Positions 29,033-34,069 of a stretch of 64,000 bases of DNA are shown here, piece after piece. The translations under genes were made by a program, and so were the position numbers. Location: sequence record ON529850.1. The stretch is one strand, 5' to 3'. Numbering within the stretch: the first letter of the stretch is position 1; the number at the start of each line of letters is the position of its first letter. Under the pieces are notes generated by a model. The model was not told the origin of the DNA and did not search any database. It was given only the letters and a program-made list of their open reading frames with translations.

Positions 29033-29063
29033 TAAAGGCCGGCGAAGAGATTCGCCGGCCTTT
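29033..29063. terminator. Bidirectional terminator
   Basis: AAAGGCCGGCGAA-GAGA-TTCGCCGGCCTTT. Confidence 0.85.
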
Positions 29064-29068
29064 CAACA

Positions 29069-29157
29069 TGGGGGTACGACCTGGATTCGAACCAGGATAA
29101 AGGCTTTCGCCTTACGGGTTATGAGCCCGCTGCCTATTCCAACCGAGCCACCGTACC
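29069..29157 (-). tRNA. tRNA with CAU anticodon (Met or Ile2) and a long variable arm
   Basis: GGTACGG/TCGTACC acceptor stem, GCGGG-CT-CAT-AA-CCCGT anticodon arm, AAGGC-GAAA-GCCTT variable arm, CCTGG-TTCGAAT-CCAGG T arm, encoded CCA. Confidence 0.9.
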
Positions 29158-29268
29158 GTGACGTGATGCCGGACGTGCTGCCGTTACACTAAATCGACCG
29201 ATGCGCGCGCACATCTTCACGTCGACTGCGGAGTTGAACCGCTCTATCCGTTTATCCAGCGCCGCCAC
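29158..29268 (-). ncRNA. Circularly permuted tRNA-like RNA (YrlA-like architecture)
   Basis: Order T arm (GCGG-TTCAACT-CCGC), AGTCGAC, loop, GTCGATT, D arm (TA-GTGT-AACGGC-AGCAC); closed by GCTGGA/TCCGGC and GTGGCG/CGTCAC. Confidence 0.6.
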
Positions 29269-29325
29269 CAAGACAGTCCCGGCCGCTAAACCGGAACCTG
29301 AGGAGTTGAACCTCTGCACTGAAGT

Positions 29326-29402
29326 TGGGAGCGGGGGAAGGATTCGCACCTCCGACCTTCGGATTATGAGTCCGACGCGCTACTTGACTGCGCTACCCCG
29401 CG
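29326..29402 (-). tRNA. tRNA-Met(CAU), initiator-like (C1 mismatch)
   Basis: CGCGGGG/CCCCGCT acceptor with C1:U72 mismatch, TCGGA-CT-CAT-AA-TCCGA, encoded CCA. Confidence 0.88.
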
Positions 29403-29780: not shown

Positions 29781-30210
29781 AGAGTGGGGAACTTTCTGTT
29801 CCAAGGCCCGGCAAGCCGGGGTTCCCCATACCCGTGGGCGCCCTTAGGCGGCCAGGAGGACTCGTTCGCCAGCGGCGAAGTTGTCGTTGGAAGCTTCGAC
29901 AGTTGTCAAAGTTGGATCGTGAGCGGCCGAAGCCGCCATGCAGACCCTAGCACCCGTCATTCAATCCCGTCACCAACGTCAATCGATACTATTCGGCCCC
30001 CTAACAGGATGTCCACCCTGGCTTTCGGCGCACACAGGAAACCTGCATGCTTCGCCGGGAACTAGCCTCATCCCCTGACGCCGGTATGGAATAGGCCATG
30101 CCTGACGCGCCGGATGGGCACCCTGTTGGTGGAGCCGACGGGATTCGCACCCGTGTCTTGTCCGTCTGTTTCGTTCTCTCTGCTTTGGACCGGAGTCCGC
30201 TGCGCGACGA
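29780..30210 (-). ncRNA. ssrA: Two-piece (circularly permuted) tmRNA
   Basis: Acceptor piece ends ACGGG-TGCGAAT-CCCGT-CGGCTCC-ACCA (30127); coding piece starts GGGGCCG (30000) giving G3-U70; tag ORF 29844-29900 VEASNDNFAAGERVLLAA*; 3' end of coding piece approximate. Confidence 0.9.
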
Positions 30211-30299: not shown

Positions 30300-30386
30300 T
30301 GGAGGGGACAGTCGGGATCGAACCGACGATACGCTTTCGCGAGCCGGGGTTGCAATCCGGCGCCTTACCACTCGGTCCATGTCCCC
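30300..30386 (-). tRNA. tRNA-Cys(GCA) with extended variable arm
   Basis: GGGGACA/TGTCCCC acceptor, U73, GCA anticodon, CGC-GAAA-GCG variable hairpin, encoded CCA. Confidence 0.88.
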
Positions 30387-30525: not shown

Positions 30526-30685
30526 TGAGTCCCAACCGAACCGATATTCTGCCCAATGACGGCCTTCCTGTCAACGATTGTCGAGGGGGGCAAGTTTAAC
30601 GGGGCTCAAACCCTGATAAAATAAGGGTTTGACAGGCTTGTTAAGGGTTGATATACGTAGGTCGTTGAAACGGAGACACCTGAAA

Positions 30686-32204: not shown

Positions 32205-33575
32205 TCAGTCGGCGGTGACGCCGTCCAGCTGGATCGCCTCGCTTTCGGCGATGTAGCGCAACACGTTCTCGGAGAACCCGTCGATGTGGGTCCAGCCGTT
32301 GCCGTAGCCGACGCCGTTCTTGGCCGAGGCGACGTTGATCATGTAGGCGCGCGACGCCTTGGGCGCCGGCATGCCGCGATTTTCCGCCTGCGCCTGTTCG
32401 TCGGTGATGACGATCAGGCGATCCGCCTGGACGTTCTCGTTGATCGCCCGGATCGCCGAAGCCAGGGCCGTGCCACGCCACGGCTGCGACTTGCGGATCG
32501 CATCCACTCCCGCCATGCCCTTGCGGGCCGGCGTCTCGACCAGGGCGTTGGAGAAGGTGAAGACGCGCACGTCCTCGCCCGGCACGATCGACGCCAGGGT
32601 GGCACCGGCGTCCATCCGGGTCAGATCGGATTTGGCGGACAGACGGGCGTCCATCGAACCCGAGACGTCCACCAGCACCACGGTCGACCCCTTCAACGGC
32701 TGCGCCGCCTTGATCGATTCCACCAGGGCTTGATCCAGCGCCGGCTCGAAGGACGGCGCATAGCGAGCCGCCGCCGTGAAGCGGAACGGCAGCACGCGGT
32801 CGGCGCCCTTGCGCGCCCGGATCGCGGCGTTGACCAAGGCGCGGTCGACGCCCGCCTGCTCCATGTTGCGCAGGTTGCGCAGCAGGGCCAGGTATCCGAG
32901 CTTATTCTCACGCAGGAGCCGCTCGAAGGTTTCCTTCTTGTCGGCGCCGCCCGACAGGGCGACTTCCCAGGTGTCCGGCGCTTCCAGAGCGTTATCGACC
33001 AGGCGGCCGAGCAGCTCGCCCTGTTCCGCCGACTTCGGCTTGACGTGGGCCAGGAAGAGCACGTCACGCAGACGCACGTCCTTGGCGCGATCGTACTTGG
33101 CGATCTGATAGGGATCGAACTTCACGAAGGCGGCGGCCAGGCCCTTCTTGACCTGCGCCGACAGAGGCGCCTTGCGACGCGCATCGCGCGGCGGATTCAT
33201 CGCCCAGTAGAGCGCCAGGAACTCCGACAGTTCATCCGCACGCTGGATGACGCGCTCGATGGTGCTCGACACCAGGGCCGAGCCCGAGCCGCGCTTCGCC
33301 AGAACGACCAGCAGCAGCAGCGGCGCATGGCGGAGCTTGGCGACTTCACGCGCTTCGATCGCCAGGGCCGCCAGCGAATCCACGGGCACTTCCTGGGCCA
33401 GGGTCTGGATACGGTCGGCGATGGTGACGCCGTCTTCGTAGAATTCGCCCTCCCAGAGCATGCAGGAAAGCACCGACCGGCGCAGCGCCTGGATCGGCGT
33501 CATGCGCGCCGCGACGGCGCCCTCATGGGTGCGTTCGTTGAACGTCTTGCGGGTATTGGCGTTGATCGCGCCCAT
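32205..33575 (-). CDS. rsr: Ro60/TROVE-domain RNA-binding protein with C-terminal vWA
   Basis: THEGA, WEGEFYEDG, QRADEL.E, KFDPYQIAKY, PDTWEVALS, LGYLALLRNLRN, VLPFRF, VDVSGSM (MIDAS), ITDEQ; AAGGAGG RBS. Confidence 0.95.
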   Translation of the reverse strand: MGAINANTRKTFNERTHEGAVAARMTPIQALRRSVLSCMLWEGEFYEDGVTIADRIQTLAQEVPVDSLAALAIEAREVAKLRHAPLLLLVVLAKRGSGSALVSSTIERVIQRADELSEFLALYWAMNPPRDARRKAPLSAQVKKGLAAAFVKFDPYQIAKYDRAKDVRLRDVLFLAHVKPKSAEQGELLGRLVDNALEAPDTWEVALSGGADKKETFERLLRENKLGYLALLRNLRNMEQAGVDRALVNAAIRARKGADRVLPFRFTAAARYAPSFEPALDQALVESIKAAQPLKGSTVVLVDVSGSMDARLSAKSDLTRMDAGATLASIVPGEDVRVFTFSNALVETPARKGMAGVDAIRKSQPWRGTALASAIRAINENVQADRLIVITDEQAQAENRGMPAPKASRAYMINVASAKNGVGYGNGWTHIDGFSENVLRYIAESEAIQLDGVTAD

Positions 33576-33919: not shown

Positions 33920-34069
33920 AACAGGGCGACGGGGGATCAATCGACCCCACCGACGTTTGACCGTGCTACCCCTACACTAAAAGCGCGCAGTGCGCTTCCC
34001 AGGAGTTGAACCTGGCCTTGCCGCTCCCATAGCGATGAAAGTGACGTCTACGCCACCCGTCGCCCTGTT
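33920..34069 (-). ncRNA. Y RNA-like element Y3 (YrlA-type)
   Basis: AACAGGGCGACGGG/CCCGTCGCCCTGTT stem; TGGCGTAG; T arm CCAGG-TTCAACT-CCTGG; closed acceptor; D arm TAGTGTAGGGGTAGCAC. Confidence 0.85.

Follow-up and report, generated by a model that had tools for sequence, protein, structure and literature searches.

Two tandem tRNA mimics predicted between the tRNA(CAU) genes of Brevundimonas phage vB_BpoS-Gurke

The Brevundimonas jumbo phage vB_BpoS-Gurke (ON529850.1, 321.5 kb, Dolichocephalovirinae) carries two tRNA(CAU) genes separated by 168 nucleotides (nt), and the question raised by this locus is what the spacer between them encodes. The analysis covered a 64,000-nt part of the record, called here the window, in which a position equals the record position minus 124000; in BLAST the window was 100% identical to Gurke. 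An original prediction had placed a circularly permuted tRNA-like RNA in the spacer and had left it between two identities: a permuted pre-tRNA, or a seventh Y-like RNA in addition to the six Y-like elements that form an array upstream of rsr, the gene of the phage Ro60 protein. Comparison with related phages confirmed, at the level of aligned sequences, that the spacer specifies a conserved structured RNA with two tandem tRNA mimics, designated module A and module B. The RNA is probably a double tRNA mimic of the YrlA type that has no Ro60 stem, although Ro60 is a possible partner.

The possibility was considered that the spacer is coding sequence. The reading frames that overlap it in the list of open reading frames are only antisense to tRNAs, and insertions and deletions of 1 and 2 nt between relatives disrupt every frame, so this possibility was rejected. 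No GenBank annotation lies within the spacer in any of the nine phage records.

Conserved fold of the 168-nt spacer

When the spacer was used as a BLAST query, the matches came from seven Brevundimonas phages only: Gurke itself, Kikimora (97% identical to Gurke) and the more distant Marchewka, Bambus, Domovoi, Papperlapapp and Kabachok (about 75%), which together formed the Brevundimonas comparison set. A consensus fold of 72 pairs was calculated from the seven spacers with RNAalifold and evaluated against 500 column shuffles and against controls in which the pairing partners were slid by 1-3 columns. In this fold 98.7% of the cells are paired and 18 pairs have changed on both sides, and none of the 500 shuffles was as good, which is to be read as suggestive and not as a probability given that the alignment comprises three deep Brevundimonas lineages. 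The slid-partner controls gave 0-2 pairs changed on both sides. Changes on both sides are found in every variable helix, and compensatory changes occur in helices 7, 9 and 10 of the consensus, which belong to module B. Of the differences between Gurke and Kikimora, the four in stems all preserve pairing, and the remaining three are confined to loops or the tail. In a wastewater contig with about 95% identity to Gurke, an A-U pair in the T-like hairpin of module A is replaced by G-C.

Modules A and B follow a common plan of closing helix, T arm, closed acceptor-like hairpin and D arm, the last of which is reduced in module A. All sequence features listed in the original prediction (T arm, acceptor strands, a 22-nt loop without CCA, D arm and paired ends) are present on the minus strand, and the order of T arm, closed acceptor stem-loop and D arm in the module B fold is that of the YrlA tRNA-like domain. 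Module B directly adjoins the downstream tRNA(CAU), whose first base is 29157; the predicted contact with the 5' end of a CAU tRNA is thus correct, and the adjacency of the element to this long-arm tRNA is the same in all relatives that carry it.

For module A the minimum-energy fold is the consensus fold. In a set of nine phages, made up of the seven Brevundimonas phages and the two Caulobacter Colossusviruses CcrColossus and CcrPW, 95.3% of the module A cells are paired, 13 of the 25 pairs have changed on both sides, and again 0 of 500 shuffles was as good. The second T-arm-like hairpin, which had been taken to be isolated, is the T arm of this module. Covariance models were built from module B (R1) and from module A (R2). 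R1 could be aligned to module A over the same positions with 9.2 bits (E 0.54), which is not significant.

The comparison was extended to the Caulobacter phages CcrColossus, CcrPW, CcrRogue, Magneto, phiCbK and BL57. R2 gave a single significant site in CcrColossus (38.9 bits) and another in CcrPW (32.1 bits). Both are located between the same two tRNA(CAU) genes and are followed by the TAAA linker and then by a diverged module B, which stops 9-10 nt short of the long-arm tRNA. The Colossusvirus module B shows covariation in the T stem (G-C to C-G), in the D stem (U-A to A-U and U-G to G-C) and also in the closing stem P2, while its acceptor hairpin gave no reliable alignment between Brevundimonas phages and Colossusviruses. 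The covariation in relatives on which the original prediction had been made to depend is therefore present in seven Brevundimonas phages and two Colossusviruses. In phiCbK, the same position is occupied by a single module with a classical YrlA D arm, which matches the Rfam YrlA model with 29.7 bits over model positions 23-85 only, that is, over the tRNA-like domain without the Ro60 stem.

Three further observations were made on the spacers. Contig 2 of wastewater run X1 matches the long-arm tRNA(CAU) in its 5' part (window positions 29113-29157) and runs on into a different module B variant with the D loop AATGGTA and the leader GTCTTTTG, so that further, unsampled relatives carry the element at the same tRNA(CAU) junction. 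In Marchewka, 66 extra nt with two further hairpins lie upstream of module A (L003:2217-2282, minus strand), and the extension is also present in Bambus, Domovoi, Papperlapapp and Kabachok. The second of these hairpins, together with the next three bases, contains the 12-mer GGCTGGTCCGAA, which is invariant in the five phages and which we take to be identical to the first 12 nt at the 5' end of human Y1 RNA. This likeness was regarded as coincidence: the 12-mer forms the 3' strand of a hairpin that does not vary, and Rfam Y_RNA gave no match there. Finally, the 5' part of the spacer in Caulobacter phages (L163:1167-1480 in CcrColossus; L166-L169) is conserved at the DNA level over four genera and contains a repeated GGCGTGACA..GGAGAGAACG motif, with a coding sequence (gp163) annotated on the opposite strand in CcrColossus; it is probably another non-coding RNA.

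Table 1. Features of the spacer and its surroundings (window positions; bp, base pairs; tmRNA, transfer-messenger RNA)
Feature	Position	Strand	Basis or remark
Spacer, double tRNA mimic, 168 nt	29158-29325	(-)	conserved fold
Module A, reduced acceptor-closed tRNA mimic	29255-29325	(-)	consensus fold; R2
Module A helix P1, 8-9 bp	29316-29323 with 29255-29262	(-)	consensus fold
Module A T-like hairpin GAGG-TTCAACT-CCTC	29300-29314	(-)	sequence
Module A 10-bp loop-closed hairpin	29275-29298	(-)	consensus fold
Module A mini D-like hairpin, 2-3 bp, UGG kept in loop	29265-29273	(-)	overlaps GTGGCG 29263-29268
TAAA, 4-nt linker between modules A and B	29251-29254	(-)	alignment; identical in CcrColossus and CcrPW
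Module B, full acceptor-closed tRNA mimic	29158-29254	(-)	alignment of relatives; R1 88.7 bits
Module B stem P2, 5-bp anticodon-type, CGGAT/GTCCG	29246-29250 with 29170-29174	(-)	alignment
Module B T arm GCGG-TTCAACT-CCGC	29228-29242	(-)	sequence
Module B 3' acceptor strand AGTCGAC	29221-29227	(-)	sequence
Module B 22-nt acceptor-closing loop, no CCA, own hairpin	29199-29220	(-)	sequence, consensus fold
Module B 5' acceptor strand GTCGATT	29192-29198	(-)	sequence; 7-bp acceptor with 29221-29227
Module B TA dinucleotide	29190-29191	(-)	sequence
Module B D arm GTGT-AACGGCA-GCAC	29175-29189	(-)	A14, G18, G19 and A21 equivalents present
Module B 12-nt leader	29158-29169	(-)	sequence
Promoter-like site TTGACA-17-CAGAAT, upstream of tRNA-Cys	30546-30574	(-)	consensus match only
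tRNA-Cys(GCA), 87 nt	30300-30386	(-)	ARAGORN/Rfam context
Permuted (two-piece) tmRNA	29844-30189	(-)	Rfam tmRNA_permuted 57.7 bits
Upstream tRNA(CAU), initiator-like, encoded CCA	29326-29402	(-)	ARAGORN; Rfam tRNA 59.8 bits, C1/U72 mismatch
Downstream tRNA(CAU), 89 nt, long variable arm	29069-29157	(-)	ARAGORN; Rfam tRNA 40.3 bits
Intrinsic terminator-like hairpin, 13 pairs then T-rich tail	29034-29063	(-)	sequence
rsr (Ro60) gene, TROVE and vWA domains	32205-33575	(-)	domain search
Y element 4 tRNA-like domain, closest module B paralogue, outside the spacer RNA	33951-34019	(-)	R1 18.5 bits, E 0.005

Relation to YrlA and to the Y elements of the Ro60 array

The tRNA-like domain of YrlA has been described as a T arm, a loop-closed acceptor and a D arm (PMC4201824; 10.1101/312249) and resembles a circularly permuted tRNA (Wang 2018, 10.1101/312249). 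The circularly permuted tRNA-like RNA of the original prediction was borne out as this published topology. The spacer resembles YrlA in having the T arm, the loop-closed acceptor, the dinucleotide UA, the D arm, ends paired at the position of the anticodon stem and an 11-bp acceptor/T stack; it also shares the strand of the Ro60 gene at a distance of less than 4 kb, and its probable co-transcription with tRNAs recalls Deinococcus Yrn2. However, the 5-bp closing stem simply stops and is followed by an unpaired leader of 9-12 nt in place of a long terminal stem, the D arm of module B is GUGU/GCAC whereas that of YrlA is a near-invariant GCUC/GAGC, and there are two tandem modules placed inside a tRNA operon and not upstream of rsr. 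The YrlA of Mycobacterium smegmatis has in common with module B a loop-closed acceptor of 7 bp, but it keeps the Ro60-binding stem and immunoprecipitates with Rsr, and the T stem of module B has 4 bp.

R1 matched only two sites in the window, module B and Y element 4 (Y4), and it found the orthologue of Y4 in Marchewka and Domovoi with 33.3 bits. Because the model recovers both Y4 and its orthologue, module B and Y4 are, on sequence grounds, paralogues. The D arm and T loop of Y4 (approximately 33925-34060) are nearly identical to those of module B and follow in the same permuted order, but Y4 has a GC-rich outer stem and the end-pairing motifs 5' TGGCG..AG and 3' ..GAUCC, all of which module B lacks. 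The window has two copies of the D-arm pattern where 0.02 are expected, one in module B and the other in Y4. Of the T-loop 11-mer it has four copies, with 0.04 expected: they are in both spacer modules and in Y elements 3 and 4 (Y3, Y4). Two more copies exist genome-wide, one in tRNA-Asp and the other in an unannotated intergenic region of 390 nt (ON529850.1 25272-25660; L175:272-662, minus strand). In the latter region the 11-mer, its sixth copy, is set in a hairpin, and the region ends with a terminator-like hairpin and a T run; it is a candidate for a further tRNA-mimic RNA.

These relations raise the possibility that the spacer represents a genuine seventh (and eighth) Y RNA, to which Rsr would bind at UGG..GCG beside P1 and which would tether or gate Ro60 and polynucleotide phosphorylase (PNPase) like the elements of the array. 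Apart from the paralogy with Y4 and the restriction of the T-loop 11-mer in the window to the two modules, Y3 and Y4, this explanation is favored by position, as the spacer lies on the rsr strand about 2.9 kb downstream of that gene and thus within the published 4-kb YrlA criterion. TGGCG is present in all seven Brevundimonas phages, followed by GCG, CAG or CGG, and Marchewka has GGCGCAG at this site as does array element 6. Ro60 contacts chiefly the 5' strand (Chen 2014, PMC4201824). Furthermore, another phage contig pairs a permuted mimic in a tRNA cluster with a DUF2828 gene.

The ends of the spacer speak against a Y RNA. The array elements have a GC-rich outer stem in which a 5' TGGCG-YAG motif pairs with a 3' CGCY..AAUCC motif. 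Neither the 3' motif nor a conserved long stem between the 5' and 3' ends, which is the Ro60 site, was found in the spacer. The GNCGAAN0-1G motif that YrlA has near its 5' end, and that reads TGGCG-YAG in the array, has at most a partial counterpart in the conserved TGGCG. The sequence GTGGCG, which had been likened to the Y elements, is indeed present (29263-29268), but in the conserved fold it is part of the reduced D arm of module A, with UGG placed in the loop by a fold that covariation supports and with no 3' partner motif. The end pairing GTGGCG/CGTCAC is restricted to Gurke: it would cross P1, it places C opposite C in Kikimora, and the other five phages lack the partner strand. The check proposed with the YrlA covariance model was negative, Rfam YrlA (RF02553, gathering threshold 69 bits) giving no match at E<=10 in 9 kb or even in 186 nt around the element; the array Y elements themselves reach only 38.8 and 31.4 bits with RF02553, so the model is weak in this lineage. 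A plus-strand gene between rsr and the spacer places the two in separate transcription units. Of the proposed seventh Y-like RNA there thus remain the tRNA-like domain, the strand, the distance of less than 4 kb and the paralogy with Y4, while the end stem, the 3' motif and the Rfam match are missing, and a genuine Y RNA is considered unlikely. In a broader comparison, neither the Gurke spacer nor the Marchewka spacer matched Rfam YrlA, Y_RNA, tRNA, skipping-rope or drum. The tLRNA mimics to which skipping-rope (RF02924) belongs differ in structure as well, in that their acceptor is open and joined to the T arm whereas that of the spacer is closed by a loop.

The second identity that had been proposed, a circularly permuted pre-tRNA, would require the ends to be ligated and the acceptor loop to be opened, giving a working tRNA. 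As in the permuted tRNA genes of Cyanidioschyzon merolae and some archaea, the 3' half precedes the 5' half, the acceptor of the precursor is closed and the ends are paired at the anticodon stem, and module B combines a 7-bp acceptor with a 5-bp stem of the anticodon type. In addition, the M. smegmatis YrlA with its 7-bp acceptor is a substrate of RNase P in vitro and in vivo, is opened by the enzyme and receives CCA (PMC4201824). However, the precursors from those genes contain an entire anticodon loop as well as a processing motif and give rise to real tRNAs, whereas the spacer has no anticodon loop. The flanks, GGATAAA/GCATCAC in Gurke and GGAAACA/GACTTCT in Marchewka, cannot be split in either lineage to give a 7-nt loop with U33, and the 5' flank consists of the linker and the 3' strand of the conserved helix P1. 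The discriminator is not followed by CCA, and the acceptor-closing loop forms a hairpin in both lineages, with different sequences. A bacterial or phage counterpart of the splicing endonuclease pathway is not known (10.1101/312249), and neither ARAGORN nor Rfam tRNA calls a tRNA within 29158-29325. A permuted pre-tRNA is thus scarcely credible.

Permuted cores and tandem tRNAs in other phages

To define the permuted core, a T arm of the form GAGCGGTTC.A..CCGCA, an interval of 12-42 nt and the D-arm pattern were combined, and IMG/VR and the JGI metagenomes were searched. The core was found at 22 viral or metagenome loci in two contexts. In the first, it lies beside an rsr/TROVE gene with few tRNAs (L141, L143, L144, L147 and L157); these loci have flanks of the Y type, with a closing stem of only 2-4 bp before the long end stem. 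In the second, it lies in large phage tRNA clusters, where the bare stem of 5-6 bp seen in Gurke recurs in L015, L145/L156 and L158, and where AT-rich phages have a different conserved flank pair around the core. It is conceivable, though rather doubtful at present, that stemless acceptor-closed tRNA mimics are a widespread and undescribed class of phage small RNAs, located in tRNA operons, freed from them by the enzymes of tRNA processing, and acting without the canonical Ro60 stem.

The AT-rich loci (L009:1423-1640, L021:11873-12090, L105:1481-1698, L111:4749-4966, L082:3651-3868 and L099:4563-4780) are framed by a co-varying stem of 5-7 bp with a 5' (U/A)CAGCAA box and a 3' ..CCUGUU. Units without the tRNA-like insert also occur in these clusters, and one gave a weak Rfam match to Dictyostelium Class I RNA (28.8 bits). 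The L009 contig encodes a DUF2828 protein; Gurke has none. The contigs with a mimic in a tRNA cluster were searched for TROVE and DUF2828, and most are 7-39% complete, so that absence of these domains is uninformative. Another arrangement was seen in L140 (6114-6308), L148, L149 and L150, where tandem tRNA-like units in normal order carry the same T and D arms; units of the L140 type have about 15 unpaired nt in place of the anticodon arm and a CCA-type end, and lie in a cluster of 26 tRNAs.

Weaker R1 matches (12.8-25 bits) were obtained in Caulobacter phages and elsewhere in Gurke, and those inspected were rejected as tandem tRNA junctions or antisense tRNAs, with the exception of the weak match that adjoins module A in CcrColossus, which synteny shows to be genuine. 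A match of 25.3 bits extends across a tandem tRNA-Gln junction in CcrColossus (L132:1464-1617); one gene contributes its T arm and 3' acceptor, and the gene after it contributes its 5' acceptor and D arm. Tandem tRNAs therefore imitate the permuted module, a reason for caution in model searches and also an indication of how the module may have originated. The match fits the proposal that YrlA domains arose from dimeric pre-tRNAs (Wang 2018, 10.1101/312249).

The same junction bears on a further explanation, namely that the spacer is a relic of two decayed tandem tRNA genes, the shape of which guides RNase P and other nucleases and lets the flanking tRNAs fold independently without any function in trans. 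That modules can arise from neighboring tRNAs, as proposed (10.1101/312249), is consistent with this explanation, and so are the constant position of the element next to the long-arm tRNA(CAU), which it adjoins through a short, mostly U-rich leader, and the highly variable spacer content of Caulobacter phages. However, the T and D loops, and not the helices alone, are strongly conserved and match the core in unrelated phages, and the closed acceptors are maintained with compensatory changes. Moreover, relatives without modules A and B still have both tRNAs, indicating that processing is independent of the modules. Decayed genes kept as a mere spacer are accordingly held to be improbable.

Proposed operon and role of the spacer RNA

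The paralogy with Y4 and the YrlA fold, in the absence of a Ro60 stem, lead to the preferred reading of the spacer RNA as a stemless double tRNA mimic of the YrlA type. A single operon comprising tRNA-Cys, the two-piece tmRNA, both CAU tRNAs and the spacer would be transcribed from a promoter near 30574 to the terminator at 29034. The spacer RNA would owe its 3' end to an RNase P cut at 29157/29158 and its 5' end to 3' processing of the upstream tRNA(CAU). The product would consist of two L-shaped bodies that show the tRNA elbow and the acceptor/T stack and have no anticodon and no free CCA end. Such an RNA may be a stable, trans-acting tRNA mimic for a protein recognizing the upper half of tRNA, and the leading candidate partner would be the phage Ro60 with host PNPase, which would need non-canonical binding. 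RNase P may also nick module B at 29198/29199, because its acceptor has 7 bp, as reported for the M. smegmatis YrlA.

A stable non-tRNA RNA released in this way would have precedents. The tRNA cluster of phage T4 yields species 1 and 2, which are freed by tRNA-processing enzymes, and we know of no function for either. The mascRNA/MALAT1-type tRNA-like RNAs are likewise small structured RNAs freed from longer transcripts by tRNA-processing enzymes. The folds of both kinds are in normal order or unrelated.

The tRNAs of the operon have features of their own. The upstream tRNA(CAU) (29326-29402) begins 5' CGCGGGG and has two of the three initiator-type G-C pairs in its anticodon stem, while the long-arm tRNA(CAU) has all three. 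The variable arms of the latter (29069-29157) and of tRNA-Cys(GCA) (30300-30386) are long and resemble class II, which is unusual for Met and Cys, and both tRNAs are conserved throughout the Brevundimonas and Caulobacter jumbo phages. A helicase-anchored search of IMG/VR added one new contig, L172 (IMGVR_UViG_3300037350_000058), in which the helicase, tRNA-Cys, the two-piece tmRNA and the initiator-like tRNA(CAU) are present; the approximately 1.1 kb between contain neither a second tRNA(CAU) nor module A or module B.

Several observations count against a functional double mimic. In the nearest-neighbor energy model, the tRNA-like fold of module B has an energy of -26.7 kcal/mol and is 3.4 kcal/mol worse than a Gurke-specific alternative, and folding of the spacer as a whole gives a z-score of only -1.15. 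Sampling covers few lineages, namely three Brevundimonas groups and Colossusvirus. In the four runs examined for expression, parts of the Gurke region were present only in wastewater contigs labeled "RNA-Seq cDNA", which are probably DNA and show neither the ends nor the strand nor the level of a transcript. Both tRNAs are still present in CcrRogue, Magneto and BL57, yet modules A and B were not found in their spacers, which have other content; the element is therefore dispensable for maturation of the neighboring tRNAs and perhaps dispensable in general. With regard to the energies, the fold was judged to be real because the comparison with relatives decides and energy alone says little. The alternative preferred by the energy model, GACGTGA/TCACGTC, was rejected, since it is specific to Gurke and is broken, not compensated, by the Kikimora substitutions.

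The role of the tRNA-like domain in Y RNAs is an open question (Chen 2014, PMC4201824, "Functional implications"). If stemless mimics do form a widespread class that acts without the Ro60 stem, this domain would have an independent function, such as the capture or decoying of a host factor with affinity for the tRNA elbow, and the Gurke locus would display the stemless and the Ro60-stemmed forms of one module in a single genome. The locus is also concrete material for the idea that YrlA-type domains originated from dimeric tRNA precursors. Gurke offers a natural case of separation of function, the same core being present with a Ro60 stem in Y4 and bare in module B, beside which lies a reduced copy.

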